64,000 bases of DNA, taken from assembly GCA_002269645.1 (NCBI GenBank), contig NIVC01002732.1, positions 62,001 to 126,000 of the forward strand, in the 5' to 3' direction. The position numbers were made by a program, and so were the translations under genes. The DNA comes from Macrostomum lignano. Taxonomy: Eukaryota. This document shows, piece by piece, positions 5,201 through 58,100 of this stretch. A model generated the notes under the pieces. That model saw only the letters and a list, made by a program, of their open reading frames with translations. It was not told the origin of the DNA and searched no databases. Within the stretch, counting starts at the first letter, position 1. Each line of letters starts with the position of its first letter.

Positions 5201-8200
5201 GCTGGCCCCTCATGCGCGAAAAGCATCTGGTCAATTTATGTGCACAAGCGAGAAATCAACCTCTGGGTAAACCAGAGTCTTAGTCTTAGAGTGTTGCGTT
5301 CTGATAAAAAGTGCGAATTGAAAAGTAGACGGTGTCCTTTTTTAAAGTCGCTATATTTGGAATATGATATTAACATTTCGTCGACAATGTAGTTATTATT
5401 AGTAATCCTAATCAAAGAACTGAAACTTTCCCAGGCCCTAATGGATGCATTCTCGGATGTGCAACAGTTAAAGCAAAATAAGCCTATGCTGATGCTGTTT
5501 CTTCATCTGCTGCTGTCTCGGCCAAATCAGTCGGCTGAAAACTCTGGCCGAGAGTCGCTCAGACCTTTGGTGAGTTTCAACTCAATTGTTACTTCATCTA
5601 GAAAGAAAAAGTGCAAAATCGCTTGTTAGTAAATCTATTAGTGAAATGTAAGAGACCGATTGGCCTACTTTGTGCAAAATAGCAAGGCGATGGCCATAAA
5701 GAACGAAATTTATCTTGAGTGAGTGACATACAGAGTGAAAAGCTTCAAATTGAGTTACATACAGAGTGAAAAGTTCCAAATTGAGTGACACACAGAGTGA
5801 AAAGCTCCAAATTGAGTGACATACAGAGTGAAAAGCTCCAAATTGAGTGACAGAGTGAAAAGCTTCAAATTGAGTGACATACAGAGTGAAAAGCTTCAAA
5901 TTGAGTGACATACAGAGTGAAAAGCTTCAAATTGAGTGACATACAGAGTGAAAAGCTTCAAATTGAGTGACATACAGAGTGAAAAGCTTCAAATTGAGTG
6001 ACATACAGAGTGAAAAGCTTCAAATTGAGTGACATACAGAGTGAAAAGCTTCAAATTGAGTGACATACAGAGTGAAAAGCTTCAAATTGAGTGACAGAGT
6101 GAAAAGCTTCAAATTGAGTGACATACAGAGTGAAAAGCTTCAAATTGAGTGACATACAGAGTGAAAAGCTTCAAATTGAGTGACATACAGAGTGAAAAGC
6201 TTCAAATTGAGTGACATACAGAGTGAAAAGCTTCAAATTGAGTGACATACAGAGTGAAAAGCTTCAAATTGAGTGACATACAGAGTGAAAAGCTTCAAAT
6301 TGAGTGACATACAGAGTGAAAAGCTTCAAATTGAGTGACATACAGAGTGAAAAGCTTCAAATTGAGTGACATACAGAGTGAAAATCTTCAAATTGAGTGA
6401 CATACAGAGTGAAAAGCTTCAAATTGAGTGACATACAGAGTGAAAAGCTCCAAATTGAGTGACATACAGAGTGAAAAGCTTCAAATTGAGTGACATACAG
6501 AGTGAAAAGGTTCCAAATTGAGTGACATACAGATTGAAAAGGTTCCAAATTGAGTGACATACAGAGTGAAAAGTTCCAGACCGAGTCACATAAAAGAGTG
6601 AAAATGTTTTCAGACCGAGTGACATACAGAGTGAAAAGTTTCCAGACCGAGTGACATACAGAGTAAAAAGTTCCAGGACCGACTGACATACATATCGAAC
6701 TTAATTTTTTATTAGCTATTCGATCTACTGGTGGACGATTGGACCGCCACCTCGGCCTCCCTGAAGACCAAACACGCCAGACGAGCAGCCTACGAAATTT
6801 ATTCAACATTCCTGCACCCGCAAGCTCCCCTGTCGCTGTCGGTTGCTATGCAATCAATCGAATATAGCGAGAAATTTGAAGAAAGCCTGGCAGACGCTTC
6901 TCAGTCTGTTTCTCGCCTGCTGGAGTCCAGCGGTCAGGATGACGGCACCAAAGCACAGCTGGCGTTGTGTTTCGATAAAGCGCAGGTGAGTTCTCGTGTC
7001 TGCTGAGTCTATCTATATAACTCACCCTCTTGTACTCTTCTAATGTCTCATATCTTACGGAGGCGTTGCCATGAATTTTAAGGTGGGGGGACAAAGCCAA
7101 AAATTCTACATGTACATGTACATAATTTTCAGAAGTGGTGTTGTCAGCGCTCATTTTGGCGCCACAGGCACTCATTTTAGCGCCGCTTTTGGTTCCGCAG
7201 GCGCTATGTTTGTCGCCCTGAAGCAAAATTATTGATTTCCATAGCGGGTCACAGGGTTGGAGGGGGGCGAAGCATTGGCATGCCCCCCCATAGCTTTTAC
7301 TGGGGGGACATGTCCCCTCTGCCCCCCTCGGTGGCGACGCCTCAGATATCTTATTTTATATCTCTAATCTACTATTGATACCTGTCTCATCCCTAAACTT
7401 TTATCTCATCTCTAATCTCCTATCTCATCTCTAGTCTGCTGTCTCATCTCTAATCTCCTATCTCATCTCTAGTCTGCTGTCTCATTTCTAATCTCCTATC
7501 TCATCTCTAGTCTGCTGTCTCATCTCTAATCTCCTATCTCATCTCTAGTCTGCTGTCTCATCTCTAATCTCCTATCTCATCTCTAGTCTGCTGTCTCATC
7601 TCTAATCTCCTATCTCATCTCTAGTCTGCTGTCTCATCTCTAATCTCCTATCTCATCTCTAGTCTGCTGTCTCATCTCTAATCTCCTATCTCATCTCTAG
7701 TCTGCTGTCTCATCTCTAATCTCCTATCTCATCTCTAGTCTGCTGTCTCATCCCTAATCTCCTATCTCATCTCTAGTCTGCTGTCTCATCCCTAATCTCC
7801 TATCTCATCTCTAGTCTGCTGTCTCATCTCTAATCTCCTATCTCATCTCTAGTCTGCTGTCTCATCTCTAATCTCCTATCTCATCTCTAGTCTGCTGTCT
7901 CATCCCTAATCTCCTATCTCATCTCTAGTCTGCTGTCTCATCCCTAATCTCCTATCTCATCTCTAGTCTGCTGTCTCATCTCTAATCTCCTATCTCATCT
8001 CTAGTCTGCTGTCTCATCTCTAATCTCCTATCTCATCTCTAGTCTGCTGTCTCATCTCTAATCTCCTATCTCATCTCTAGTCTGCTGTCTCATCTCTAAT
8101 CTCCTATCTCATCTCTAGTCTGCTGTCTCATCCCTAATCTCCTATCTCATCTCTAGTCTGCTGTCTCATATCTAATTTCCTATCTCATCTCTAGTCTTTA

Positions 8201-11200
8201 ACCATATTTAGCCTCTCCATATCGTTCGTTTTTCATGTTCTCAAGTCACTGATTCATTAATGAATAAATAAAGAAACGTCTGCTCGCCGCGCAGAACGCC
8301 GTCCGACCAGCCCTGGCCAATCTAGTCTCATCAGCTGGCGCCTGGCTTCGGGCTCGTCAACGCGACGGTTTCGACGTACTCGGCGGCGGCGACTTCCTGC
8401 CGCCCGGCTGCGAGTCCGCCATCGCCAGTCTCCTACGCGGTGGCGGCGGCGTCAGCTCCAGCAGTTCTGACGCGCAGCGCCTTCTCACGGCTAAACTGCA
8501 GCCTCATCTGTCTGAGCAGCTTCGCCTGTTGCGCCAGCAGCCCGGCTTAGGCGAACAGCTGATAGCCAGCTGCTTGGCTACAATAATGGCGCACAATTTG
8601 AAAGTTGGCCAATCAGATATCGGGGCCAGTGTTGACAGCCTCACGTCCGCTGTCGATGCTTCTTCGATGGCGTTGTCTGGGCCGTCTTCGTCTCTGTCCT
8701 CCGATCATCATCCAGTCGGTCAGCAGCTATTCAACTGTCAGCGGAGCAACAGCGGCGCGGCCGGCTTGGTTAATCGGCAACGACTGTCCATCTTTACTGG
8801 CAGTCGGTCGGAGAAAACCCGCTTCGGGTCGCATTCCGTTGAGCTGGCGTCCTTTCACAGCATCAGGCACTGCGTCTCCTGCAAGGCTCTGCTGAGTGGC
8901 CCGGGGCCGCAGGGATACCTGTGCACCGGTGAGCTGGGTTTTCATGGCTGAATTGAGCTGGGATCTCATGGGTAAATTGAGCTGGGATCTCATAGCTGAA
9001 TTGAGCTGGGATCTCATGGGTAAATTGAGCTGTGATCTCATGGGTAAATTGAGCTGTGATCTCATGGGTAAATTGAGCTGGGGTCTCATGGCTGGATTGA
9101 GCTGGGATCTCATGGGTGCTCCCCTCCCATAATTGAGCTGTGATCTCATGGGTAAATTGAGCTGGGGTCTCATGGCTGGATTGAGCTGGGATCTCATGGG
9201 TGCTCCCCTCCCATAATTGAGCTGTGATCTCATGGGTAAATTGAGCTTGGGTATCATGGCTGAATTGAGCTGGGATCTCATGGGTAAATTAAGCTGGGTT
9301 CTCACCGCTGAAATTGAGCTGGGATCTCATGGCTGAATTGGGCTGGGATCTCATGGCTGCCCCTCTCCCAAAATTGGGCTGGGATCTCATGGCTGCCCCT
9401 CCTATATAACTAAGCTGGGATCTCATGGCTGCCCCTCCTATATAACTGAGCTGGGATCTCATGGCTGCCCCTCCTATATAACTGGGCTGGGATCTCATGG
9501 CTGCCCACCCATCACTTTTACAACAGGCGAATGCGGTCACACAATTCATCGCGTGAAAGACTGCGCTGACAAACTGGCCGCACTACCCTGCAAACGGAAC
9601 TCCAACAAAAGCTTATCAAGTGAGTGCAACTGCTGACGTATTTGTTTTGTTAGTTCTTCCGGTTTCCATTTCAGATTTACAGATCGTTTTTGATTTTTTA
9701 CATTCAATTCATTATAGTATTTAGTTTTGTTAAATTATACAAGCGAAATTATGTCATCAATTTATTACTAATTACTTTGTACAGCCAAGCGACCCAGACC
9801 TGCTTCGTGTATAATACGCGAGGACCAAGGTGAACAATCAGTGCTAAATTTTGTATAGAAATTCATAGTCTGTTGTTGTTGTTGCTTTTAGTTTCTTTGC
9901 TTTGCCTGAGGTAAATGTTACTACTAATATGGCTATTTATTGATTATTTGGCTGTGATAATTCTTCATCTGCTTTCTCGATTCATACTGTGAGGCAATAG
10001 TAAATTATTAATTCCTATTGAAATTTGATTTGTCATTAGCGAATTTTTATTAAATAGGCGCACCCCAATTTAGCGACTGCTGACACCCAAATTTAGCGTA
10101 TGCTGACACCCTAGTTTAGGGACTACTGACACCCTAGTTTAGCGTATGCTGACACCCTAGTTTAGCGACTGCTGACACCCTAGCTTAGCGTATGCTGACA
10201 CCCTAGTTTAGGGACTACTGACACCCTAATTTAGTGACTACTGACACCCTAGTTTAGGGACTACTGACACCCTAGTTTAGCGTATGCTGACACCCTAGTT
10301 TAGGGACTACTGACACCCTAATTTAGTGACTACTGACACCCTAGTTTAGGGACTACTGACACCCTAGTTTAGCGTATGCTGACACCCTAGTTTAGGGACT
10401 ACTGACACCCTAGTTTAGCGACTGCTGACACCCTAGCTAGTTTAGCGACTGCTGACACCCAAATTTAGCGTATGCTGACACCCTAGTTTAGCGACTACTG
10501 ACACCCTAGTTTAGGGACTACTGACACCCTAGTTTAGCGACTACTGACACCCTAATTTAGTGACTACTGACTCCCTAGTTTAGCGCTCCCTGACACCCTA
10601 TTCTAGCGACACCCCTAATTTAGCGCCCCCTCACACCGTAAATTGGCATTTCTCGATGCCAAATATTTTATAATTTCGCATGCATAAAAATTAATTTATT
10701 AAACGCTGCATCATCATCATCATACTACTAATAATCTATAAGTAGTTTTGTATCGCATTCCATTTTTATTTCGTACACGCGTTACCTGACTGGTGCACTT
10801 TTAGTTAGCGGTATAAGAGTCTTTCTTCTATTTGTTCCCTCTATTCTACTCGCCAATTGTCTCTGACAGTCGGTAAGACGAAAAGCTTTCGCGGTAAGAG
10901 CTCTTCTTCGTCGACCAATACCGCAACGAAGGAGCATCGCGTCGAATTCCAAACCGACGCCGCCGCCGGTGGCCGGAAAGGCTCCGCCGGTAGTGCATTG
11001 GCGCCGAGTCAGCTGACTATCGCGGCGCCGCAGCAGCCGACTTCTCCGCTCTCGCTTGAGCCACTGACGCCTTCGGAAAGCGATCCTCCCAGCACGCCCA
11101 CTGCGACCCGGCTAGGCTTGCCTAACATTTTTGGCGTCATTACCAATAAGAGGCCGGCGTCTACTATGCTCTATTCTAGTGCTAATGATTCTGCTGCTGG

Positions 11201-14200
11201 CGATCCGGCCTTGGGTAATTTCTGCATTCAGAGTTAGTAAAATCTAATCTCTCTAATCTCGTGTCTAATCGCATTTCTCACTCTCATGTCTTTTCTCTAA
11301 TCTCTCTAATCTCTCAGTGTCATGTCTATCTAATGTCTCAGTCTCATGTCTATCTAAACTCTCTGTGTCATGTCTATCTCATATCAGTCTCATGTCTATC
11401 TAAACTCTCTGTGTCATGTCTATCTAATCTTTCACTCTCATGTCTATCTACATGTAATCTCTCAGTCTCACGTCTATCTAATCTCTCAGTGTCTATCTAA
11501 TCTTTCACTCTCATGTCTATCTACATGTAATCTCTCAGTCTCACGTCTATCTAATCTCTCAGTGTCTATCTAATCTTTCACTCTCATGTCTATCTAATCT
11601 CTCAGTCTCATGTCTATCTAATGTCTTAGTCTTCGCATACTCAAAACTGAATTGCTAACAATCATACTAGTTAACACAAGTGGTGCTAATGAGGTAAAAT
11701 TAAAGTTAAACTTGAAACGCCTGCTAATTGCGGTTTCGTAACTAAAAATAAAAAAAAATTTATAACCACCATCTAACCTGTAATAAAAGTAACAATACTA
11801 TAATGAGCATATTAATAATAATTGGTTGAATTTGCGGTTTGTCTCAATGCGACGTTTTTTATGTCGGTGTGCTTGCTTCGCACCTTTTCCCGCCGTTTTG
11901 TCTGTCTTTAATTACAAATTGCAAAGTTGCTACTTCTGCTTGCCTTCGTAAGTAATATATTTATACTTTAAGCATATAAACAAATACTGCAGCGCGCCAA
12001 TTCAATTAAATGCAATACAGAATTTTTAATCCTATTGTGCACTGGTGCATGATTTGTCCCATCGTTTGCTATGTTTATATGATCATCTCGTCATCTGCCC
12101 AGTGTGCGCTCATTGCGTGACCTTTGCCCTCCCCGACCATCTGCAGCCGACTTGATGCTGGCGCCTCCGCCAGCTTCTCTGCCGGCCGCTCGCAGCGAGA
12201 CAAATGTCGGCCCGCTGGATGCCGATGACCAGCAGCCGCCTCGGGCTGGCAGCTTCAGTGAGTGGCTGTGTGTCTGGCTGTGTGTCTGGCTGTGTGTCTG
12301 CCTGTGTCTGCCTGTGTGTCTGCCTGTGTGTCTGCCTGTGTGTCTGGCTGTGTCTGCCTGTGTGTCTGACTGTGCGTCTGGCTGTGTCTGGCTGTGTGTC
12401 TGCCTGTGTGTCTGGCTGTGTCTGGCTGTGTGTCTGGCTGTGTGTCTGGCTGTGTGTCTGGCTGTGTGTCTGCCTGTGTCTGCCTGTGTGTCTGCCTGTG
12501 TGTCTGCCTGTGTGTCTGCCTGTGTGTCTGCCTGTGTGTCTGCCTGTGTGTCTGCCTGTGTGTCTGCCTGTGTGTCTGCCTGTGTCTGCCTGTGTGTCTG
12601 CCTGTGTCTGGCTGTGTGTCTGACTGTGTGTCTGGCTGTGTGTCTGGCTGTGTGTCTGGCTGTGTGTCTGGCTATGTGTCTGCCTGTGTGTCTGCCTGTT
12701 TGTCTGCCTGTGTGTCTGCCTGTGTCTGCCTGTGTGTCTGACTGTGTGTCTGGCTGTGTGTCTGCCTGTGTCTGCCTGTGTCTGGCTATGTGTCTGCCTG
12801 TGTGTCTGGCTGTGTCTGGCTGTGTGTCTGGCTATGTGTCTGGCTGTGTGTCTGGCTATGTGTCCGCCTGTGTCTGCCTGTGTGTCTGGCTCTGTGTCTG
12901 GCTGTGTGTCTGACTGTGTGTCTGGCTATGTGTCTGGCTATGTTTCTGTCTTTCTGTTTGGCTGTCTGTGGTTGTGTGTGTCTTTCTGTCTGCATCTGCG
13001 AGTCTGTCCTGCTGTCTGTTTGTCTTGTCTGTCTGTCCAGCTCCCCTCTGCCTTGCTGCACAGCCAGTTTTTCAATCGCCCATGCGAATCCGTCGCCATG
13101 CAGGCCGAGAGCTGGCGCCTCCCTCTAGCGGCGTGGCTGTCGGCCGTTCCAGCAGCGACAGAGAGACGGGCGGCAAAGCCGACCACGTTCGATTCTTCTC
13201 TTCTCCCGCTGATAAGAAGGTAACGGTTAAATAAGAGTCTGACATAGTCAATAAGAGTCAGACAGGGTCAGTAAGGGTCAGTAAGAGTCAGGCAGGGTCA
13301 GTAAGAGTCAGACAGGATCAGTAAAAGTCAGAAAGGGTCAGTAAGAGTCAGACAGGGTCAGTAAGAGTCAGATAGGGTCAGTAAGAGTCAGACAGGGTTA
13401 GTAAGAGTCAGATAGGGTCAGTAAGAGTCAGAAAGGATCAGTAAGAGTCAGATAAGGTCAGTAAGAGTCAGACAGGATCAGTAAGAGTCAGACAGGATCG
13501 GTAAGAGTCAGATAAGGTCAGTAAGAGTCATAAAGGGTCAGTAAGAGTCATAAAGGGTCAGTAAGAGTCAGATAGAGTCAGTAAGAGTCAGACAGGGTCA
13601 GTAAGAGTCAGACAGGGTCAGTAAGAGTCAGATAGGGTCAGTAAGAGTCAGACAGGATCAGTAAGAGTCAGATAAGGTCAGTAAGAGTCAGACAGGATTA
13701 GTAAGAGTCAGACAGGATCAGTAAGAGTCAGACAGGATCAGTAAGAGTCAGACAGGGTCAGTAAGAGTCAGACAGGATCAGTAAGAGTCAGACAGGGTCA
13801 GTAAAAGTCAGAAAGGGTCAGTAAGAGTCAGACAGGATCGGTAAGAGTCAGACAGGATCAGTAAGAGTCAGACAGGGTCAGTAAGAGTCAGACAGGGTCA
13901 GTAAGAGTTAGACAGGGTCAGTAAGAGTCAGACAGGGTCAGTAAAAGTCAGAAAGGGTCAGTAAGAGTCAGACAGGATCGGTAAGAGTCAGCCAGGGTCA
14001 GTTAGACTCCGACAGGATCCGTAAGAGTCAGACAGGGTCAGTTAGAGTCATACACAGAACAAGAGGGAACGATCTCGCTCCACTGGATCTGCAATTCCGC
14101 AGGACCCAGACTCGGAGCGGCAGAAGATCTACCAGAGCATCAGCAGTCACGAGAACATACAGAACGTGCCGTCAGACTTCGGTCAGTACATTGTGCAGCA

Positions 14201-16896
14201 CAAGGTTGACACCCGTTTGCAACAGCTTCGCTCAACTACCGGCGATTCAAAATCGGACTTTGATCGATTGAAAGATTATCAATTGGCTTTGCACGAGATT
14301 TTATTTGCTTGCATGAGCCACGTTCGAGCTCTCACCGTTCTGGATTTATTGTTCGTTCGCACCTGGCCGGAGAGCTGTCAAGAGATTATGAAACAATTAG
14401 GCTTGCACTTTGTGCCGAGATGCATCCAGTTGTACAAGAATTTGTTAGAGTGCATCGGCAAGCCCAGTTTAAACGAGTTTGTTGCTACGGGCAAAATAAC
14501 CGGCTTCGGTCAGAGACTGCTAGCCTGGTACAGCGATGAGCAGAACTTTCTCAACTTCAAACTGCTCAGCTTGAGCTTTGGCTTCTCGCGTAGCAGCAGA
14601 TCTCACACCGGAAGTAAACGGTCGACCGGAAATGAAGACGATATTATACTCAGGCTGGAATCCTTAAGGCGAGAGAATGCCGAATTGAATCGGTTTATTC
14701 AGCTGGCTGAGCACCATGAGGCCGCTCAGAGACTGGATTTCAAAGCCTATTATTCTATGAATATGCAGTTCACCATGCGGATGTTCCTGCTGCTGCAGAC
14801 TGCGGTCAAGAGCGCCAGGAAGGCCAAGAGTTCCTACAAACTGGCTGGTGAGTGTCTTTATTGTGGCACAGAGTTCAGTCTGGAGCTCTCCCTGATGTGT
14901 CTGTGCCATCTATCTGCTCTGTCCCTGATGTGTCTGTGCCATCTATCTGCTCTCTCCCTGATGTGTCTGTGCCATCTATCTGCTCTGTCCCTGATGTGTC
15001 TGTGCCATCTATCTGCTCTGTCCCTGATGTGTCTGTGCCATCTATCTGCTCTCTCCCTGATGTGTCTGTGCCATCTATCTGCTCTGTCCCTGATGTGTCT
15101 GTGCCATCTATCTGCTCTCTCCCTGATGTGTCTGTGCCATCTATCTGCTCTCTCCCTGATGTGTCTGTGCCATCTATCTGCTCTCTCCCTGATGTGTCTG
15201 TGCCATCTATCTGCTCTCTCCCTGATGTGTCTGTGCCATATATCTGCTCTGTCCCTGATGTGTCTGTGCCATCTATCTTCTCTCCCTGATGTGTCTGTGC
15301 CATCTATCTGCTCTCTCCCTGATGTGTCTGTGCCATCTATCTGCTCTCTCCCTGATGTGTCTGTGCCATCTATCTGCTCTCTCCCTGATGTGTCTGTGCC
15401 ATCTATCTGCTCTCTCCCTGATGTGTCTGTGCCATCTATCTGCTCTCTCCCTGATGTGTCTGTGCCATCTATCTGCTCTCTCCCTGATGTGTCTGTGCCA
15501 TCTATCTGCTCTGTCCCTGATGTGTCTGTGCCATCTATCTGCTCTGTCCCTGATGTGTCTGTGCCATCTATCTGCTCTCTCCCTGATGTGTCTGTGCCAT
15601 CTATCTGCTCTCTCCCTGATGTGTCTGTGCCATCTATCTGCTCTCTCCCTGATGTGTCTGTGCCATCTATCTGCTCTGTCCCTGATGTGTCTGTGCCATC
15701 TATCTGCTCTCTCCCTGATGTGTCTGTGCCATCTATCTGCTCTGTCCCTGATGTGTCTGTGCCATCTATCTGCTCTGTCCCTGATGTGTCTGTGCCATCT
15801 ATCTGCTCTCTCCCTGATGTGTCTGTGCCATCTATCTGCTCTCTCCCTGATGTGTCTGTGCCATATATCTGCTCTCTCCCTGATGTGTCTGTGCCATCTA
15901 TCTGCTCTCTCCCTGATGTGTCTGTGCCATCTATCTGCTCTGTCCCTGATGTGTCTGTGCCATCTATCTGCTCTGTCCCTGATGTGTCTGTGCCATCTAT
16001 CTGCTCTGTCCCTGATGTGTCTGTGCCATCTATCTGCTCTGTCCCTGATGTGTCTGTGCCATCTATCTGCTCTGTCCCTGATGTGTCTGTGCCATCTATC
16101 TGCTCTCTCCCTGATGTGTCTGTGCCATCTATCTGCTCTCTCCCTGATGTGTCTGTGCCATCTATCTGCTCTGTCCCTGATGTGTCTGTGCCATCTATCT
16201 GCTCTGTCCCTGATGTGTCTGTGCCATCTATCTGCTCTCTCCCTGATGTGTCTGTGCCATCTATCTGCTCTCTCCCTGATGTGTCTGTGCCATCTATCTG
16301 CTCTCTCCCTGATGTGTCTGTGCCATCTATCTGCTCTGTCCCTGATGTGTCTGTGCCATCTATCTGCTCTGTCCCTGATATGTCTGTGCCATCTATCTGC
16401 TCTGTCCCTGATGTTGCCCCAACTTCCCAACCCTACCCAGAGAGAGATCTTCCCGACCTAGAGAAGTGCCAAGAGAAAGCCAAGATGGTGGTTGACTACA
16501 GCAATTTCACCAGCGTACGACTGAAAGAACTGAGCAGACAGCTGGTTCTGAGTTCAACATTCAAATCATTCTGGGTTCGCTGCAAACTAGACAAAGATCA
16601 CGTGGACCGAGTCAGGGATCAGATCTCCCATTTGCACACCTGTCAGCTGGTACAGACTCGCGAGGTTGCTATGCCCGGATTTGAGAATTATCGATTGAGA
16701 TTGTTAGTGTTTAGCGAGTTCCTGCTCATCGTGTCCGAGACCGAGGAGCCCAAGGGTGTTGTTAAATACCAGCTGCTGCGGCATCTAGGTGAGTGCTGGT
16801 CTGGGGTGGCTGGCTAGTTTGCTAGGTTATTGTTAGGTAATAGGTAGGTAAAATAGCATGATGATGGACTTGTAGGTGAATTGGATTGATTGATGA

Positions 16897-16975
<79 letters not shown>

Positions 16976-16976
16976 C

Positions 16977-17015
<39 letters not shown>

Positions 17016-17018
17016 CTA

Positions 17019-17054
<36 letters not shown>

Positions 17055-17064
17055 GGACAGACAC

Positions 17065-17116
<52 letters not shown>

Positions 17117-20100
17117 CGACAGACAGACAGACAGACAGACACACAGACAGACAGACAGACAGACAGAAAGATAGACAGACAGACAGACAGACACTAAGAC
17201 AGACAGACAGACAGACAGACACTAAGACAGGCAGACAGGACAGACAGACCAGACATACAGCGAGGGATGCAGGTCGAGAGGGAGACAGGCAGAATGGCAT
17301 ATATACCGGTAGATAGAAACACAGGTAGTCGGGCAAGGGCTGTATAGATAGAAATCAATATTAGGTCCGCATAGACGCACAGGGCTGTCTCTTATTAATT
17401 TTGTATTTAAGTAATGCCCCATCGTTTCCCACCTCAGGCCAGAGCATGTCAGTGGGCGGCTCAGGCTCCTCAGAGGCCTCAGACGTTGGCAATATGGGCA
17501 GCCTGCGAGCTGTCAGCTGCCCGCCTATCATCCCTATGCCAAACGTTATCCACGTGTTCGAAGGCCGCCAACAGAAATCGTCATCTAGCGGTCGCCAACC
17601 TACGGAGTTCCGCATGGTGATTGACCACCCGAGCACTAGCCGCACCGAGTCTCTTCTAGTGGTGTTCAACCTGCGCAAAGACAAGCCTAAAATGCCATTC
17701 TCAGACAGAGAGACCGACACTTCAGCTAGCGATATTGTTGAGTCGATTAAAAAATTACAGGAACGATTTAAAGCTGTCAACATAAACAGATCGGGTTCGG
17801 TTAATAGCATTGGCTCTGTCACCTCCGCTCCGGCTGAGATGGCCAGCGGGTCCAGTCCATTAAGTGAGGATGCGGTCGCTTCAAGGTGAGTGTGTTTGAC
17901 CTGGATTTTTGAGTAGCTTAGACTGACCTACCCACAGTGATTTTTTTTTGTGTCTGGCGGTCTGACCTGACCTTAGAGTCTAGGGGTTTGACATGACCTT
18001 AGAGTATCCGGAGTCTGACCTGACCTGCGAGTTTCTGGGGGGTCTGTCATGACCTTTGAGTTTCTGGGGGTCTGACATGACCTTCGAGTTTCTGGGAGTC
18101 TGACGTGACCTTTGAGTTTCTGGGGGTCTGACGTGACCTTTGAGTTTCTGGGGGTCTGACGTGACCTTTGAGTTTCTGGGGGTCTGACGTGACCTTTGAG
18201 TTTCTGGGGGTCTGTCATGACCTTTGAGTTTCTGGGAGTCTGACGTGACCTTTAAGTTTCTGGGGGTCTGACCTGACCTTTGAGTTTTTAAGGATCTGAC
18301 CTAACCTTTGAGTTTCTGGGGGTCTGACGTGACCTTTGAGTTTCTGGGACTCTGACGTGACCTTTGAGTTTTTGGGGATCTGACCTGACCTTTGAGTTTT
18401 TAAGGATCTGACCTGACCTTTGAGTTTCTAGGGATCTGACCTGACCTTTGAGTTTCTGGGGATCTGACCTGACCTTAGAGTGTCTGGGTCTGAAATAAAC
18501 TTTGAGTACCTTAATCTGGCCAGCTTTTGGGTAGGTGCTAACCTACGTAATTTTGGTTTTTTGGGTCTGACCTAATTGTCAGTAGTTGGTGGTCTGACCT
18601 AGTTGTCAGTAGTTGGGTCTGACCTAATTGTCAGTAGTTGGGTCTGACCTAATTGTCAGTAGTTGGTGGTCTGACCTAATTGTCAGTAGTTGGTGGTCTG
18701 ACCTAATTGTCAGTAGTTGGTGGTCTGACCTAGTTGTCAGTAGTTGGGTCTGACCTAATTGTCAGTAGTTGGGTCTGACCTAATTGTCAGTAGTTGGTGG
18801 TCTGACCTAATTGTCAGTAGTTGGTGGTCTGACCTAATTGTCAGTAGTTGGTGGTCTGACCTTTCAAGTAACTGACTTGCAATCTCTTTAACATTCCGTC
18901 TCCCATTTTATCAGCAGTACTCGAGGCTCAACTCTGACGGAAGAGAAAGAAGACGACATTGAAGACCAGGAGGACATGCCGTTGCCCTCGCTGCCTCAGT
19001 CAGAGGCTTCATCAGCTGGCGAGATGCTGCACAATCGTTCCGACTCGCCTGACTCGTCATCGTCGCCTTCAACTCCGATTGCTAACGAAGACTCGTCTCT
19101 GATAGTTAGTCCTGGGTCGATTGATAGAGCCGCCGATCAATCCCAGTTAGAACCGTTGCAGGATCAACCTTCCAGTCTCTCTGCTGTCGGCGTAGATGAA
19201 GCTCAGATTGACAGCTTGTCAGCCAGGCAATTGCAGTTAGCTTCGGAGTTGCGCAGCCAGCTGTGTTCGGTGCTCAACCTCAACCCGGAATCTTTTGACG
19301 CTGTTTCTGAGGTGAGATGCTTGTATTTGAGCTCTGCAAAGGGATCACTAAATCACCCTACAGAATCACCCCTAATCACCCTACAGAATCGCCCCTAATC
19401 ACCCTACAGAATCACCCCTAATCACCCTACAGAATCGCCCCTAATCACCCTACAGAATCACCCCTAATCACCCTACAGAATCGCACCTAATCACCCTACA
19501 GAATCGCCCCTAATCACCCTACAGAATCGTCCCTAATCACCCTACAGAATTGCCCCAAATCACCCTACAGAATCACCCCTAATCACCCTACAGAATCACC
19601 CCTAATCACCCTACAGAATCGCACCTAATCACCCTACAGAATCGCCCCTAATCACCCTACAGAATCGTCCCTAATCACCCTACAGAATTGCCCCAAATCA
19701 CCCTACAGAATCACCCCTAATCACCCTACAGAATCGCCCCTAATCACCCTACAGAATCACCCCTAATCACCCTACAGAATCGCACCTAATCACCCTACAG
19801 AATTGCCCCAAATCACCCTACAGAATCACCCCTAATCACCCTACAGAATCGCCCCTAATCACCCTACAGAATTGCCCCAAATCACCCTACAGAATCACCC
19901 CTAATCACCCTACAGAATCACCCCTAATCACCCTACAGAATTGCCCCAAATCACCCTACAGAATCACCCCTAATCACCCTACAGAATTGCCCCAAATCAC
20001 CCTACAGAATCACCCCTAATCACCCTACAGAATCACCCCTAATCACCCTACAGAATCACCCCTAATCACCCTAAAGAATCACCCCTAATCACCCTACAGA

Positions 20101-23100
20101 ATCACCCCTAATCACCCTACAGAATCACCCCTAATCACCCTACAGAATCACCCCTAATCACCCTACAGAATCACCCCTAATCACCCTACAGAATCGCTCC
20201 AAATCACCTACAGAATCACCCCTAATCACCCTACAGAATCGCTCCAAATCACCTACAGAATCACCCCTAATCACCCTACAGAATCGCCCCTAATCACCTA
20301 CAGAATCGCCTTTATAATTATGTAAAAATAATATATGATCCAACTTATTCAATACGGATATCCCAGTTCGCCCAAGAGTCCGACCAGCCCGACACCAAGG
20401 ATGGCGTCCTGGTTGCCTACAAGCAGTTCGAGCAGCTGCTGGAGACGCTGCCCCGCCTAATGAAAGCATTGCTACCTTCGTCAGAAGGGCCCGGCGCAGC
20501 TGAGACCCTGCTGGATCAGCTGACCGTTGGAACCGGTAAGACGGCCAAAGTTCTCCAACAACTCAGTGGCCTCCAGTCATCTGATGACGACAAAGAAAAT
20601 GATTTAAATGACGTAGCGGACGCTGGAGCTTCGGCGGAATCGGTTAATCCTGATCAGGTGCGTTTCTTGTGTCAAAGTGCCAATATTTATAGTACACGTA
20701 TATGAATCAATAGCCATTGGAGCTTTGTTCACGTCGAAGATCTCTAATCACCCATTCCACTCCATTCACGCACCTAACTCTGTTCACCCACCACAATCAG
20801 ACTCAGTTCACCCACCTCATTCCATTCACCCACCCCACTCCGTTCACCCACACCACTCCGTTCACCCACCTCATTCCATTCACCCACCCCACTCCAGTCA
20901 CCCACACTACTCCGTTCACCCACCAAACTCCGTTCACCCATCTCATTCCATTCACTCACCCAACTCCGTTTTCCCACCTCATTCCATTCACCCACCCACT
21001 CCGTTCACCCACCTCCTTCCATTCACCCACCCACTCCGTTCACCCACCTCATTCCATTCATCCACCCTACTCCGTTCACCCACCCACTCTATTCACCCAT
21101 TCCACTCCATTCACCCACCCCACTCCAATCACACACCCACTCTTCACCCACCCACTCTAATCACGCACCCACTACATTCACCGATGCCACTTCACAGTCA
21201 CCTAATGCACCCCAGGTACCCATTTTAAGAATAAATGCAATCATTAAACTATTGATGCTCGGCATTCAATCAACTGCATCTCTAAACCTTACCCCTTGCC
21301 AATAATCAGCAACAGGAAGCTGTACAACAAGTCTGCAACCCTACAACAACTGGTGTTGAAGATTTTCCCCGAGATTCACAACAATCAGAGCAACAACAGG
21401 AGCAACATGAAGAGCAGACTGCTAATATTGAGCAGGAGAAACACGAATTCACCGACACTTCATTGGCGATGACTCATTCCGATGATGAAGGTAAAAATTT
21501 TAATTATGATTTTATTTATTCTTATATATGCTTTGGCGCCTAAGAATTAAAGTAGACAATATTTATTTATTCATTAAAATTCAAGTTTATATTTGACACT
21601 GTAACTGACTTTCGGGGTGGCGTGATTATCATTATTAAGCTCCCAGGGGAAACCTACGCTCGTAATTATAATTGAGCCATCCAATAAAATTTGACCTTCA
21701 AATCTACCCAATCAAATTTGGCCTTCAAGGCCACTCAATAAAATTTGACCTTGAAATCTACCCAATCAAATTTGGCCTTCAAGGCCAACCAATAAAATTT
21801 GATCTTGAAATCTACCCAATCAAATTTGACCTTCTAGGCCACCCAATAAAAATTGATCTTCAAAGCCACCCAATAAAATTTGACCCTTAGAATCAACCCA
21901 ATTAAATTTTACCTTTAAGGCCACCCACAGATACTAGAATAACTAGATGGGCCACTCAGCACATTTGCGTGTAAGCTACTTTCAGTTCAGTAGCAAGTTA
22001 AACTGAGGCATTTTACGATAAGGCGCATTTATTGGCTCTTCCCCCCCAGCTTAAACCCTCAAACTTCACGCAGAACCTCTACCCCCGCCCCGCCGCCCAA
22101 TTTTTATTACTTTCCTCCGTTGTTCCAGTCTAAAGCTGCCATGTACATTTCAATGGACTGGCTAATGTACATTATTGCTGAACCAATAAGCAAGCTGGTT
22201 ACGCCTGCAAGCTTGGGCTTCTAAACTTATCAAAGTCATTTCAGCTGTATTCTTCTTTGCTACTGAACTAAAAAGTAGAAAGCTGTTTTACTAAGTTACT
22301 AATATACGCCTGAGTGGCCCATCTAGTTATTTTTAGTATCTGTCAGGCCACCCAATCAAATTTGACCTTTAAGGCCACCCAATCAAATTTGACCTTTAAG
22401 GCCACCCAATCAAATTTGACCTTTAAGGCCACCCAGTCAAATTTGACCTTTAAGGCCACCCAATCAAATTTGACCTTTAAGGCCACCCAATCAAATTTGA
22501 CCTTTAAGGCCACCCAATCAAATTTGATCTTTAAGGCCACCCAATCAAATTTGACCTTTAAGGCCACCCAATCAAATTTGACCTTTAAGGCCACCCAATC
22601 AAATTTGATCTTTAAGGCCACCCAGTCAAATTTGACCTTTAAGGCCACCCAATCAAATTTGACCTTTAAGGCCACCCAATCAAATTTGACCTTTAAGGCC
22701 ACCCAATCAAATTTGACCTTTAAGGCCACCCAATCAAATTTGACCTTTAAGGCCACCCAATCAAATTTGACCTTTAAGGCCACCCAGTCAAATTTGACCT
22801 TTAAGGCCACCCAATCAAATTTGACCTTTAAGGCCACCCAATCAAATTTGACCTTTAAGGCCACCCAGTCAAATTTGACCTTTAAGGCCACCCAATCAAA
22901 TTTGACCTTTAAGGCCACCCAATCAAATTTGACCTTTAAGGCCACCCAGTCAAATCTGACCTTAAAACCTGCACAATCAAATTTGATGAAGAGTTCGCTT
23001 TAGCACACTAGAGAGAGAGGGAAAGAGAGAGAGAGAAAGAGAAGAGAGAGAGAAATTAATCTAGTGTCTAAACGCACGAACTCCAACTTCCAGACCTCAA

Positions 23101-34236: not shown

Positions 34237-34435
34237 CCCCAAGCAGGAAGTTTGGCGTTCTTCCGCGTGTCTGAAAAAAGGAATCGACAAAACTGGTCGG
34301 TCGAATTCTACTGGACGCGAAGGCTGCACGAGAGGGCTCGCCCAGCCCCACCGCCGCCTCCCCGGTGGGGATAAATTATAACTCTCTATTTCCCGTGTCT
34401 AGGTCGATAACACGTCACAGTTCAATTCCCTAATA

Positions 34436-35398
34436 ATGGGCTCCAGCAGCTCAGCATTGAGTAGGCGTACTCAACAGTTGTCAATATTGGACGAGTTTCA
34501 AGTTCAATCGATGAGATCAGACGAACTCGATGGCTTGGAGGTGGCAACAGCAGGTGACGATCAACAACAATTCGAGTTTTCCCTGAGCCGCTTACCCTAC
34601 GAGTGTCTGTGTAGGATCTCTTCTCATTTGAGCAGCGACGACTTGCTCAGCCTGTGCCAGACCAGCCCGGAGAACTGCAGACTGTTCGGCGCCGAGGTGT
34701 TCTGGACGTCGGCTGGACCGCGATCCAGCTCCAGAGAATCGCTGTACGAATCATTGAACCACGCGTTGGAACGGAAGCTCTGCATCCCTGTGGAGAGTCT
34801 AAACAATGGCACCTACCTGCCGTCGCTTGAAGAAGCAGACAGCTACTCTGGGCGAGTTGTCTACCTGCACGATTTGAACTGCCGCAATGCAGCGGTTGTC
34901 GCGGGCTCCGGCAGGTCCGGCATCGGATCAGAGGGCAGCCGTCTGAGCATTCACGACTACGTGCCGGGCCTGCCTAAAGGCACCTATCAGGTGACTCTGC
35001 GGGCGAAACTCGGTGCTCACTGGCGCCTACAGGGTGTCACTGAGGTGCTGCTGGTGCCGGATGCGCCCAGGCTCGACTGCCTGCTCCGAGCTCGCATTCC
35101 CGAGCGGAAGTGGCGCAGTCTGGCCTTCAGACACGGCTTCGAGCGCTGGTTCTGCCTTCGACTCGGCCGCCTGAGCCTGCCGCGCTGCAGCGGCATCCGA
35201 GTACAGATTGTCAACAGCCGGATTAGCAAGAGCCATCTGAAGGAGGGCGTCTATTTGGACTGCATCGAGCTGACGCCGCTGGACTGCCCCGTCGCTGAGT
35301 TTGTCGGCTATCGTCGGACGAGACGAAAAGATGAAGCAGGCGCCGCCGCCGTCGCCGCCACGGATGCTGCAGCAGAAGCTTATTGCCAGGTGTTGTGA
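34436..35398 (+). CDS. F-box protein with N-terminal myristoylation-like motif and C-terminal PP2/Nictaba-like lectin domain (320 aa, single coding exon)
   Basis: Uninterrupted GC-rich ORF. MGSSSS start; F-box LSRLPYECLCRISSHLSSDDLLSLCQTS; PP2-like GLPKGTYQVTLRAKL...WFCLRLGRL...HLKEGVYLDCIELTPL. A 5'UTR acceptor (tttcccgtgtctag) ends at 34402. Confidence 0.8.
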   Translation: MGSSSSALSRRTQQLSILDEFQVQSMRSDELDGLEVATAGDDQQQFEFSLSRLPYECLCRISSHLSSDDLLSLCQTSPENCRLFGAEVFWTSAGPRSSSRESLYESLNHALERKLCIPVESLNNGTYLPSLEEADSYSGRVVYLHDLNCRNAAVVAGSGRSGIGSEGSRLSIHDYVPGLPKGTYQVTLRAKLGAHWRLQGVTEVLLVPDAPRLDCLLRARIPERKWRSLAFRHGFERWFCLRLGRLSLPRCSGIRVQIVNSRISKSHLKEGVYLDCIELTPLDCPVAEFVGYRRTRRKDEAGAAAVAATDAAAEAYCQVL

Positions 35399-55500: not shown

Positions 55501-58100
55501 CAATGGAGGTGGATGCTGTTGCAACTCAACACACCAATGGAGGTGGATGCTGTTGCAACTCAACACACCAATGGAGGTGGATGCTGTTGCAACTCAACAT
55601 ACCAATGGAGGTGGATGCTGTTGCAACTCAACACACCAATGGAGGTGGATGCTGTTGCAAATCAACACACCAATGGAGGTGGATGCTGTTGCAACTCAAC
55701 ATACCAATGGAGGTGGATGCTGTTGCAACTCAACATACCAATGGAGGTGGATGCTGTTGCAACTCAACATACCAATGGAGGTGGATGCTGTTGCAACTCA
55801 ACACACCAATGGAGGTGGATGCTGTTGCAACTCAACACACCAATGGAGGTGGATGCTGTTGCAACTCAACATACCAATGGAGGTGGATGCTGTTGCAACT
55901 CAACACAGCAATGAAGGTGGATGATGTTGCAACTCAACACACCAATGGAGGTGGATGATGTCGCAACTTAACACACCGATAGAGGTGGTTGATGTTGCAA
56001 CTGAAGACACCGATTCAGGCGGGTTTTCGCCCTTTAAGGACAACAATGGTTAGCTGAAAATGTAATGTTAATTTTCAAACTACAAAATTAGTTACAAACA
56101 ATTACCCGCAGGTGTCTCTGGCACTCATAGCCAGCGGTCGCCTTGATCGGACTCTGAAGCAGCTTCAAGAAGCCGGCTATGACTATGACGGAATCTCTGG
56201 CGGTCTTGGCGGTGGCGGCGGTGGCAGCAACGGCCCCGGCGTCAGCGAAGACATTCGAGTTCGCGAGAGGCAGCAATTTCGATTAAGATTCCGCGGCAAC
56301 ATCATCTGCGAGGATGACGACCCGGACAGGCCGTCAGAGTTTGTGCTGCACTTTAATTCTCAGATGAAGAATCGACTCGAGCTTTCGTGAGTGTCTGTGG
56401 ACTCTGGTAGGGTATTTATAAATACTTTAGATACTATATGGGATATTGGTAGATTCAGCCGTAGGGTATTGGAAGAGACTATGTTAGTATGTTGCAGACT
56501 AAATAGAAAAATCCAGTTTTAGGATACTTGTATTGGTACGCTCTAAGTTATTGGTAGCCTCTAGCTGTTGTAGTCTTTTAAGGGGACCACGAGAATTTCC
56601 CGTAGGAAGCTTTCCCGCGGCGAGGTTTTCCCGCAGGAGGTTTTCCTGCAAGAGTTTTCCCGCCGAGGTTTTCCGGCTGGGTTTTTACAGTCGGAATTTC
56701 TAGTCAAATCCAGTCTATGGTCCCCAGTCTAGTCCAGAACTAGCTCGACTAGATTAGAACTAGCCTAGAATATACTAGACTAGACTAGACTAGGCTATAT
56801 TAAACTAGACTATATTAAAAACTAGACTAGATTAAAGGCTAGACTAGATTAGAACTAGACTAGATTAGATTTCAAATCCAATTCCGACTGTAAAAACCCT
56901 GCGGGAAAACCTCGCCGCAGGAAAATCTCGCGGGAAAATCTCGCTGTGAAAACATCCTGCGGGAAAACCTTACTGCGGGAGAACTTCATAGACCTGTTTT
57001 AAGGATTCGAACGTGGAAGAAGCTATAGCTCAACCTTTCAATCACTATAGATGGTTTTATACATTTTCTTCGGAACTTATTGGTTACTGTTAGTAGTAAG
57101 CTTTGCCTTTCAAAACTATGCAGCGTTACGGAACGAGATCGCTTTGCCCAGCGAGCTCTTGACCAGTTCCGCGGCTATATCGAGGTCACTACGGACATGG
57201 CGGTGCAGAAGCCAGTAAAGGACGCAAAGAAGGGAAACCCTCATCAGACAGTGACTGTGATGGAGGAGGCTGTGGTTGCTAAGATGCTCATCTGCGTGCC
57301 CAAATCTGAGGAGGAGTTGCGAGTCAAGTCGCCTAGGGCAACGCCTTTTGTCTTCAAATCGAAAGGTAAGACCTTCTGATAGCTAAGTAAGCTAGGAATG
57401 TTTATCAAGAGTACAAACTGATCGATTTTTATTTATAGACTCGGTGACAATGGAATATCTTCGCGATCTTGCTGAACTTGTCTGCGACAATTGGGAATTG
57501 CTGGCCGATAAGTTGGAGGTTTCTAAGAAACGATGCTCAGTTATTAAGAAGACGAGCGAGTCACAGGAGACCCAAGCCTATGATATGTTAATTACCTGGG
57601 TTAAGAAGCTGCCCGTGTTGAAAAATAAGGTGAGAAATCATTTTCTTTGATTGCAAGTAAACTTGCTTGCATTTGTACTTTGAGAAGTACCCTCGTGTAA
57701 TCATAACTGCATTTTCTTAACCAGTTAGTCGCTGGCGACAATATAATGGCTCATATACTGCAGTAGCCCAAGTATAGGCTCGCCAAGCTGTCTTCCATAA
57801 AGCCCCCGCCCAATGGGGGCAGTACACTAGTCCACAAAACTAATTGGCGTTGAAATTGTATTTGTCTGACTATTATTTAAAGTATATTATTATTATTCTG
57901 CAGCATCAATTCGATGGCGACAAGTCCTTGCTGACATGCTGATATAATGCTCACTAATCATAAATTTCATTGGCTCGCGCCAGGTTCTGATCCTCTGCAG
58001 GGCGCTGAATGCATCGGGTTATCCCCATCTGGCGGCCAGCTTGAGGGACGCCGAACGAGAGCGCAGACTGCGAGTCGAGAACGGCGATGACTACGATTGA
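43280..58100 (+). CDS. DTHD1: Death domain-containing protein 1-like (coiled coil + ZU5-ZU5-UPA-DD), 10 exons, 937 aa; gene span
   Basis: Phase-consistent exons: 43280-43580, 45795-46003, 46611-47261, 50610-50958, 51684-52029, 53063-53195, 56112-56386, 57124-57365, 57439-57629, 57984-58100 (2814 nt). KTDRFSVGKPGIRYSSSVDNRICLTVP...VQPVD matches recalled DTHD1 [27 protein letters not shown]...IQPVD; FRLRFRGNI and LHFNSQMKNRLEL also match. C-terminal death domain. Confidence 0.85.
43581..44400. repeat. 24-bp minisatellite (atgagagtgacaaatgagtgaata)
   Basis: Starts at the splice donor. Confidence 0.95.
45100..45610. repeat. Polypurine (GGAGA-type) low-complexity tract
   Basis: Almost exclusively G/A on the + strand. 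Confidence 0.9.
45795..46003 (+). CDS. DTHD1-like exon 2, coiled coil
   Basis: cttcag acceptor, GAG|gtgagg donor, phase 1/0. Confidence 0.75.
46080..46535. repeat. 11-bp repeat (gtgytactraa)
   Basis: Direct reading. Confidence 0.95.
46611..47261 (+). CDS. DTHD1-like exon 3, E/R/A-rich helix and first ZU5 domain
   Basis: cgccag acceptor, TAC|gtgagt donor; DELVSGVVRLEP...MLPHCA ZU5 motif. Confidence 0.85.
47925..50552. repeat. 82-bp satellite, about 32 highly homogeneous copies
   Basis: Period 82 (agaatggg at 47941 and 48023); two main biallelic sites. Confidence 0.95.
50610..50958 (+). CDS. DTHD1-like exon 4, second ZU5 domain
   Basis: ctatcag acceptor, CAC A|gtgagt donor. Confidence 0.85.
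51020..51617. repeat. 32-bp minisatellite (tctactttatctactcagaatctacctcgggc)
   Basis: Direct reading. Confidence 0.95.
51684..52029 (+). CDS. DTHD1-like exon 5 (alternative in-frame acceptor at 51618 possible)
   Basis: cccgcag acceptor, CG|gtaaac donor; RPVTFNFQLP resembles ZU5 KPVTLFLP. Confidence 0.75.
52060..52790. repeat. 15-bp repeat (aatcccaaatcccct)
   Basis: Direct reading. Confidence 0.95.
53063..53195 (+). CDS. DTHD1-like exon 6 (absent from the ORF track)
   Basis: cccgcag acceptor, GAG|gtttgt donor, phase 2/0; FIAFRV...SACFVLRQKSDN fills the expected homology gap. Confidence 0.8.
53620..54060. repeat. AG-rich low-complexity tract
   Basis: Direct reading. Confidence 0.85.
55325..56005. 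repeat. 34-bp minisatellite (ggaggtggatgctgttgcaactcaacacaccaat)
   Basis: About 20 copies, decaying at both ends. Confidence 0.95.
56112..56386 (+). CDS. DTHD1-like exon 7, UPA-like domain
   Basis: cccgcag acceptor, TC|gtgagt donor; VRERQQFRLRFRGNI. Confidence 0.85.
56590..56990. mobile_element. Foldback-type element with subrepeated arms
   Basis: Left arm has ttttcccgc subrepeats plus gggtttttacagtcggaatt; right arm has aattccgactgtaaaaaccc plus gcgggaaaa subrepeats; (ctaga)n centre; no TSD identified. Confidence 0.7.
57124..57365 (+). CDS. DTHD1-like exon 8
   Basis: atgcag acceptor, AAA G|gtaaga donor; DRFAQRALDQFRGYIEV. Confidence 0.8.
57439..57629 (+). CDS. DTHD1-like exon 9, death domain
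   Basis: tttatag acceptor, AAG|gtgaga donor; YLRDLAELVCDNWELLADKLEV...QAYDMLITW. Confidence 0.9.
57984..58100 (+). CDS. DTHD1-like exon 10, end of death domain
   Basis: cgccag acceptor; VLILCRALNASGYPHLAASL; TGA at 58098-58100. Confidence 0.85.
   Translation, partial: VLILCRALNASGYPHLAASLRDAERERRLRVENGDDYD

Follow-up and report, generated by a model that had tools for sequence, protein, structure and literature searches.

A multi-exon gene encoding a putative guanine nucleotide exchange factor (GEF) for Rho, of the RGS-RhoGEF type, lies in the stretch of the Macrostomum lignano genome analyzed here, which comprises 64,000 nucleotides of forward strand (assembly GCA_002269645.1, contig NIVC01002732.1, positions 62,001-126,000), is called the window below, and supplies all coordinates. 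The sequence is eukaryotic, and minisatellites are very abundant in it. A first-pass annotation of this DNA had described the gene as one intact frame of more than 1,600 codons, and the list of open reading frames (ORFs) does hold an 883-amino-acid (aa) frame at 14166-16817. This ORF was rejected as a protein since it crosses a 1593-bp GT-AG intron with a 33-bp minisatellite, and it was further ruled out by the different length of that intron in a second genomic copy of the locus (L001, described below). The frame runs on only because the intron is a multiple of three in length and contains no in-frame stop. At least 16 blocks are joined by splicing to give the product (Table 1), and it is this multi-exon gene whose coding length comes to ~1,600 codons. 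Residues 1-153 of the annotated protein P0013 match only L001, upstream of the part common to the window.

Four consecutive GT-AG introns were found in consistent phases. The first of the two exons that encode the DH domain yields a product identical to residues 707-955 of P0013, and the spliced DH-PH region as a whole is identical to the annotated proteins P0005 and P0013. An exact-cluster look-up matched the product to UniRef A0A1I8GHI4 and NCBI PAA74481.1 (P0013), the latter a 1585-aa entry named "hypothetical protein BOX15_Mlig001480g2, partial". The locus comprises two DH exons of a spliced and apparently functional M. lignano gene. The two database entries differ in their exons: PAA74481.1 uses a short exon near 9778-9834 and skips a Ser-rich exon at ~10870-11211, within which A0A1I8GHI4 begins, and the difference reflects either alternative splicing, alternative promoters or inconsistent annotation. 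Further intronic minisatellites with 12- to 33-bp units occupy 12263-12969, 13232-14054, 16897-17260, 17953-18862 and 19351-20307, and several of the minisatellites are open in at least one frame, giving long spurious ORFs on both strands (e.g., an 11-aa repeat read as protein).

Table 1. Coordinates of the RhoGEF-like gene in the window, its exons and the diagnostic positions of its DH domain (CR1 and CR3, conserved regions 1 and 3).
Feature	Positions	Strand	Basis
Whole multi-exon gene within the window (5' exons upstream of the window)	2028-25245	+	16 collinear tblastn blocks of P0013
Two exons (~5432-5590, 6716-6985), RGS-like region including a 15-residue stretch	5432-6985	+	tblastn of P0013; weak Pfam match
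Two exons (8295-8928, 9527-9619), end of RGS-like region and atypical, intron-split C1-like zinc finger	8295-9619	+	splice candidates, spliced translation
Exon, N-terminal helices and DH alpha1-alpha5 (CR1-CR3), phase-1 end	14103-14847	+	acceptor ttccgcag/GAC, donor CTG/gtgagt
Glu65 (GAG), switch-I Glu equivalent (LARG E794, PDZ-RhoGEF E741, AKAP-Lbc E2005)	14295-14297	+	hhalign, calibrated numbering
Ala69-Cys70 (GCT-TGC) for canonical Thr-Glu (LARG T798-E799)	14307-14312	+	phmmer, hhalign
CR3 motif, 11 residues: Q222 kept, R replaced by F223, K by R226, YP by M227-F228, L229-231 kept	14763-14795	+
Intron, 1593 bp, GT...AG, skipped by the annotated protein	14848-16440	+	~1.0 kb in L001
Intronic minisatellite, 33-bp unit, 46.4 copies, 98 % matches	14886-16414		Tandem Repeats Finder
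Exon, end of alpha5-alpha6 loop, alpha6, DH-PH linker, first PH strands	16441-16788	+	acceptor ccctacccag/AGA, donor CTAG/gtgagt; tblastn of P0013 and P0001
Asn270 (AAT), alpha6 Asn kept (LARG N975), followed by a 13-residue stretch	16503-16505	+	hhalign
Exon, remaining PH and Ser-rich tail	17438-17885	+	splice sites, phase; 100 % tblastn match to P0013 1072-1220
Downstream coding exon, acidic, Ser-rich	18915-19311	+	splice sites, phase, tblastn of P0013

The DH fold is confidently predicted to be kept. AlphaFold2 (AF2) modeled the DH domain, and with it the product of its first exon, at a predicted local distance difference test (pLDDT) score of ~90, with helices at residues 50-85, 101-129, 177-203, 213-241 and 246-295 and N-terminal helices as in Lbc-type GEFs. 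All of the top 50 Foldseek matches to the model were DH or DH-PH structures (best E-value 7.5e-8), with the DH/PH structures of p115, PDZ-RhoGEF and LARG in the first ranks.

The remaining domains are less recognizable, and the earlier statement that the rgRGS, C1 and PH domains remain in the protein was not borne out at Pfam cut-offs. Matches to the RGS-like family PF09128 covered ~40 residues at 21.4 and 18.3 bits (cut-off 27), the precomputed match of P0013 being labeled 'PF09128 (weak)'; a family profile of this region retrieved no rgRGS domain among PDB sequences, and AF2 modeled the RGS-like/C1 region as helical but unreliably, with a mean pLDDT of 44.6 that is too low for a fold comparison. 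The C1_1 score was 15.5 bits against a cut-off of 26.5. When spliced, the C1-like finger reads H-x12-C-x2-C-x13-C-x3-C-x4-H-x4-C-x8-C, which differs from the canonical spacing H-x12-C-x2-C-x13/14-C-x2-C-x4-H-x2-C-x7-C in having C-x3-C and H-x4-C. For the PH domain there was no Pfam match and the AF2 model was of low confidence, and no PDZ domain was visible in those N-termini that are available, that of P0006 beginning with Met. An acidic stretch of 12 residues precedes the RGS-like region, is common to the paralogue P0003, and presumably resembles the acidic hook of p115. The whole protein is strongly diverged, and not its DH catalytic motifs alone; on ancestry, an input from G12/13 would be plausible.

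To compare residues, the Macrostomum family alignment (the window protein, two paralogues and two fragments) was aligned by hhalign with 16 canonical RGS-RhoGEF DH-PH sequences, namely human PDZ-RhoGEF and LARG and 14 ARHGEF11/12-like proteins. The match had a probability of 97.6 % and an E-value of 3.6e-12, at an identity to canonical DH-PH of 15-18 %, and this alignment to ARHGEF11/12-type DH domains returned the register that the first-pass annotation had used. ARHGEF11 was also the sole phmmer match among PDB sequences, again in that register. LARG numbering was taken from the 1TXD sequence anchored at E982 with a single offset, which ten more quoted residues fit (E790, E794, T798, E799, N983, R986, E1023, Y1039, T1116 and S1118). 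Residue counts refer to 123 canonical RhoA-GEF DH domains aligned with hmmalign to a hidden Markov model of LARG and PDZ-RhoGEF.

By hhalign, the CR1 segment HE65ILFA69C70 corresponds to NELFVTE of PDZ-RhoGEF (LARG E794, T798 and E799), the CR3 segment MQ222F223TMR226M227F228LLL to MQRLTKYPLLL (LARG Q935, R936, K939, Y940 and P941), and N270 to the Asn of helix alpha6 (LARG N975). Two earlier observations were thereby confirmed. The Thr-Glu pair of CR1 is replaced by Ala-Cys, encoded by GCT-TGC within a 12-residue stretch whose register is given by both phmmer and hhalign, and the CR3 equivalent lacks the Arg and the Tyr-Pro, on which the sequence, phmmer and hhalign agree. A third observation, a deletion of about six residues after the alpha6 Asn, stood in part: Asn aligns with Asn, within a 17-residue stretch of the next exon, and the ~6-residue gap appeared only in a greedy local hhalign of low confidence, the confident alignment ending at the Asn. 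MAFFT distributed the alpha6 gaps otherwise, a gapless register would place an Arg at the position of LARG R986, and a global hhalign of the CR3-to-PH segment gave a meaningless 5-column match.

The window protein thus keeps the first Glu of CR1, the Gln and Leu-Leu (L229, L230) of CR3 with a basic residue where CR3 has its Lys, and the alpha6 Asn, and it loses the Glu of the Thr-Glu pair (TE-Glu), the Arg that follows the CR3 Gln (QR-Arg) and the Tyr-Pro of the KYP motif, which are C70, F223, M227 and F228 here. A basic residue is also kept at the position that hhalign pairs with PDZ-RhoGEF R868, the counterpart of Lbc R2136. E65 is invariant in all Macrostomum paralogues and its equivalent is Glu in 115/116 canonical domains; the alpha6 Asn is present in 107/111, and three canonical proteins likewise carry Arg at the CR3 Lys position. 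Since the TE-Glu (118/118), QR-Arg (117/122), Tyr (122/122) and Pro (121/122) are nearly invariant in canonical domains, their loss in the window is far from chance variation. The Thr of the Thr-Glu pair is naturally variable, being Gly in NET1 and ARHGEF3. As a separate observation, a Ser/Arg-rich insert of ~18 residues (DH residues 159-176, ~14577-14630) lies between helices and was modeled as disordered (pLDDT ~44); the paralogues conserve it in part, whereas canonical RGS-RhoGEFs lack it, and it could be a phospho-regulatory loop.

DH domains catalyze exchange by stabilizing the nucleotide-free GTPase through a set of direct contacts, and solved RhoA complexes allow these to be located. 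Glu2005 of AKAP-Lbc, equivalent to LARG Glu794, makes the hydrogen-bond network with switch I, in which it binds the Val38 backbone nitrogen of RhoA along with the Thr37 and Tyr34 side chains; Thr2009, Val2159 and Leu2160 form a hydrophobic patch for Val38; Lys2156 and Gln2152 reach the carbonyls of Phe39 and Asp59, respectively; and V2192 and V2196 of alpha6 pack on Leu69 (PMC4232260). Many LARG contact residues, such as E982 and N983, differ in the active AKAP-Lbc (PMC4232260). Lbc R2136 is a RhoA-selective Arg that reads RhoA Asp45/Glu54 (PMC4156082). Both LARG E794 and PDZ-RhoGEF E741 are the first Glu of the CR1 motif (E-L-F-Y-T-E in LARG) and not the TE-Glu, and none of the TE-Glu, QR-Arg, Tyr and Pro is among the RhoA contacts in PMC4232260. 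Single Tyr-to-Ala mutants, GEF-H1 Y393A and p190RhoGEF Y1003A, are reported to be catalytically inactive (PMC2213606, PMC5716289).

These assignments change the basis on which the DH domain had been called catalytically dead. The premise that the CR1 Glu, the CR3 basic residues and the alpha6 Asn region contacting the RhoA switches were hit does not stand: the contact Glu is E65, which is kept, as are R226 and N270, and the equivalents of the Glu, Arg/Lys and Asn were largely placed elsewhere by the alignment than had been supposed. The diagnosis is weakened because the critical Glu had been mis-assigned to the Thr-Glu pair. That the domain is aberrant at otherwise invariant positions holds; the argument built on mis-assigned residues does not. 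Most of the contact residues for RhoA switches I and II known from the solved complexes are kept.

The family to which the protein belongs was found almost entirely within M. lignano. The spliced 488-aa DH-PH sequence matched only M. lignano proteins, a profile searched exhaustively against 1.84 billion representative proteins gave 12 matches at E<=1e-3, 10 of them from M. lignano, and a mixed profile used in a word-indexed search for homologues returned three known Macrostomum matches only. The best match outside Macrostomum in the exhaustive search was ARHGEF11-like (P0009, Pelobates cultripes CAH2281834.1). This protein carries three tandem near-identical DH domains followed by a single PH domain, and its third DH, the copy aligned, has Glu in place of the alpha6 Asn; the triplication is either a recent tandem duplication of an exon block or an assembly artefact.

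At least four paralogue lineages are present in M. lignano: the window type, P0003/P0010 (70 % identical to the window over CR1, the only part covered), P0001 (53-54 % identical) and P0006 (50 % identical to the window and 66 % to P0001). The older M. lignano predictions P0002, P0004, P0007 and P0008 are frame-shifted chimeras. The losses are common to at least three lineages with full DH data, and P0003/P0010 has the same CR1 change; the kept Glu, CR3 Arg and Asn are common to all lineages with data. Identity in the three-way comparison of paralogues was 53 % in CR1, 59 % in CR3 and 51 % in alpha6, and 29-35 % in the intervening segments, so that constraint on the domain is strongest at the classical GTPase face. 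The TE-Glu, QR-Arg, Tyr and Pro are replaced by Cys, Phe, Met and Phe in the window and by Ser, Gln, Met and Val in P0001 and P0006, such that the first two positions co-vary (Cys with Phe, Ser with Gln). We read this as a lineage-restricted family with the order RGS-like, C1-like and DH-PH, derived from RGS-RhoGEF stock (ARHGEF1/11/12, RhoGEF2).

PAA74481.1 is encoded on contig NIVC01000945.1 of the same assembly (L001, 222145-273698), which is a second copy of the locus. Comparison with positions 1-27500 of the window showed near-identical coding sequence (synonymous divergence, dS, ~0.008) and a mosaic of introns at 93-99.8 % identity. The minisatellite intron is ~1.0 kb in L001 and 1.6 kb in the window, the 33-bp array differing by ~18 units. 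Such a mosaic of introns points to gene conversion, to homeologues or haplotypes having recombined, or to mixed-haplotype assembly in this neopolyploid genome. With copies this similar and introns this mosaic, a ratio of non-synonymous to synonymous rates was not appropriate and only counts were used. Over the DH-PH region there were 5 synonymous and 0 non-synonymous differences, an outcome with a probability of ~5e-4 given that ~22 % of sites are synonymous; the synonymous to non-synonymous counts were 0:4 in the N-terminal acidic exon and 3:5 in the C-terminal region. No stop or frameshift was found in the 1407 codons compared, and the splice sites are intact and in phase.

The protein belongs to a known family, of which it is an unusual variant. 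The reading we prefer, to which we would give about an even chance, is that of a lineage-specific, selectively maintained and rewired RGS-RhoGEF-type DH-PH module that probably still docks a Rho GTPase, with exchange activity that was retained in altered form slightly favored over its loss. A single helical turn (i, i+4) separates the QR-Arg from the Tyr, and on alpha5 both would face away from the GTPase, towards the TE-Glu of alpha1. That the TE-Glu, QR-Arg and Tyr changed together (Cys/Phe/Met versus Ser/Gln/Met) leads us to infer that a polar network between the helices was re-packed. The re-packing would have occurred once, early in the lineage, and the GTPase-facing surface would have been under selection ever since. 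A Rho-family GTPase would most likely still be docked through the canonical face, and exchange would lean slightly towards being retained but altered, complete catalytic death being a serious alternative.

Several observations weigh against this reading. The CR3 Tyr, found in 122/122 canonical domains, is Met227 here, and the TE-Glu (118/118) and QR-Arg (117/122) are gone as well. The positions of LARG V974 and V978 (AKAP-Lbc V2192 and V2196), as mapped by alignment, carry Ser, Cys or Gly in this family, and alpha6 may be ~6 residues shorter, which would alter the DH-PH geometry. The Pfam RhoGEF family (PF00621) scores 20.2-21.9 bits, and 25.8 bits in the paralogue P0001, against a cut-off of 27.6. 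Additionally, the copy-to-copy test comprises only 5 substitutions and the flanking introns are equally similar, and the proposed Glu-Arg-Tyr network is based on helical periodicity and on how the residues co-vary rather than on coordinates.

The nearest competitor is one that we hold possible at somewhat less than an even chance. The protein may be a true pseudo-GEF, whose DH-PH folds and perhaps binds a Rho GTPase or another partner without catalyzing exchange, and whose role would be that of a scaffold, of a sequestering factor, or of a regulator with a dominant-negative effect on canonical RhoGEF signaling. The TE-Glu, QR-Arg and Tyr-Pro, four positions that hardly vary across 123 canonical DH domains, are lost, alpha6 differs beyond the Asn, and the Pfam DH score is below threshold. 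The lost Tyr, which we take to be Y393 of GEF-H1 and Y1003 of p190RhoGEF, would be the residue whose single mutation inactivates either enzyme. All paralogue lineages with data have these changes fixed, so they do not represent recent decay. Against a pseudo-GEF, the window protein retains the CR1 Glu along with the Gln, the Leu-Leu, the Asn and the RhoA-selective Arg, and the CR3 Lys is conservatively replaced by Arg; conservation among the paralogues is highest on the GTPase face, and binding through the kept contacts would be expected to promote exchange.

Precedent for a pseudo-GEF comes from Bcr and six other Dbl members, so termed in PMC5727386, which cites Jaiswal et al. 2013. There, what defines a pseudo-GEF is that the CR1 Glu and CR3 Lys are lost and the GTPase-contact residues are not conserved (PMC5727386), a description that does not fit the window protein, which retains the Glu, has Arg for the Lys and preserves the other contacts. 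Bcr and the other pseudo-GEFs resemble it in having a DH fold that departs from conserved CR1/CR3 residues and in them is kept as a non-catalytic module. In Bcr, the CR1 Glu, CR3 Lys and specificity residues are absent and a loop blocks the GTPase site (PMC5727386), whereas the Macrostomum DH keeps contact residues and loses invariant residues that make no contact. A more specific version, which we consider rather unlikely, is that of a conserved multi-copy Macrostomum family in which the Glu-Arg-Tyr network, buried and elsewhere universal among Dbl-homology domains, has been replaced and a DH that docks Rho by its canonical face would have lost exchange or made it conditional and would be a pseudo-GEF unlike Bcr. 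The further proposal that the protein is a decoy uncoupling the receptor from RhoA activation is speculation.

A change of substrate is improbable. An active GEF could have been switched to another Rho-family or atypical GTPase through a remodeled alpha6 and core, as the alpha6 contacts for RhoA Leu69 are now small or polar, the length of alpha6 may differ and the family has expanded into several paralogues; against this, the basic residue that reads RhoA Asp45/Glu54 is kept and the closest relatives in sequence and structure are all RhoA-specific GEFs. That the odd residues are mutational noise in a decaying pseudogene, a mis-assembly or a mis-annotation, to which all domains scoring below Pfam thresholds, the minisatellite-saturated genome and the chimeric older predictions might point, is very unlikely because the same substitutions recur with conserved blocks in paralogues only 50-66 % identical, the two copies retain an open frame, in-phase splice sites and a purely synonymous DH-PH, and the DH model is confident.

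Among known systems, the DH-PH region is nearer to ARHGEF1/11/12 than to other Dbl subfamilies by phmmer, profile search and Foldseek. The RGS-RhoGEFs ARHGEF1 (p115), ARHGEF11 (PDZ-RhoGEF) and ARHGEF12 (LARG) have the same order of RGS-like, C1-like and DH-PH regions, and we take Drosophila RhoGEF2 and C. elegans RHGF-1 to be relatives of the gene by that order. Besides supplying the sole PDB sequence match, the best outside match and the top structures, this group shares with the window protein the Glu of CR1, the Gln, basic residue and Leu-Leu of CR3, the Asn of alpha6 and the Arg selective for RhoA, and helices precede the DH domain in the window protein. It is set apart from them by its low DH-PH identity, the loss of the TE-Glu, QR-Arg, Tyr and Pro, the Ser/Arg insert, a possibly shorter alpha6, and RGS-like, C1 and DH scores below cut-off. 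Lbc-type GEFs (AKAP13/Lbc, ARHGEF2/GEF-H1 and ARHGEF28/p190RhoGEF) likewise have a C1-like finger upstream of an Lbc-type DH-PH; unlike the window protein, they keep the TE-Glu, QR-Arg and KYP, are inactivated by Tyr-to-Ala mutation and are without an RGS-like region.

Elsewhere in the window, a 331-aa ORF at 34403-35395 (+) matches the F-box family PF00646 at 22.9 bits, above the cut-off of 20.5. The paralogue fragment P0007 is labeled 'F-box domain-containing protein' in UniRef, which suggests that the old chimeric predictions fused the same two neighbors, and synteny of RhoGEF and F-box genes may be common to the paralogous loci. An exon-like segment at 57396-57647 (+) shows resemblance to the Death domain (PF00531), its 22.2 bits falling slightly short of the cut-off of 22.6, and may belong to another multi-exon gene at ~56058-57650.

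Few GEF folds have been studied as closely as the DH domain, and its TE-Glu, QR-Arg and KYP Tyr are treated as hallmarks, the Tyr being routinely mutated to obtain GEF-dead alleles. The gene described here encodes an uncharacterized hypothetical protein of one flatworm lineage, and its wider impact is moderate. Its family replaces the three hallmarks together and keeps most of the GTPase contacts, and so provides a natural test of whether these residues are catalytic or only structural, in a model organism that is transgenic and amenable to RNA interference. Should the domain prove active, the "dead" mutants made at a single site would be context-dependent; if it is inactive but binds Rho, the family would represent a new class of pseudo-GEF.

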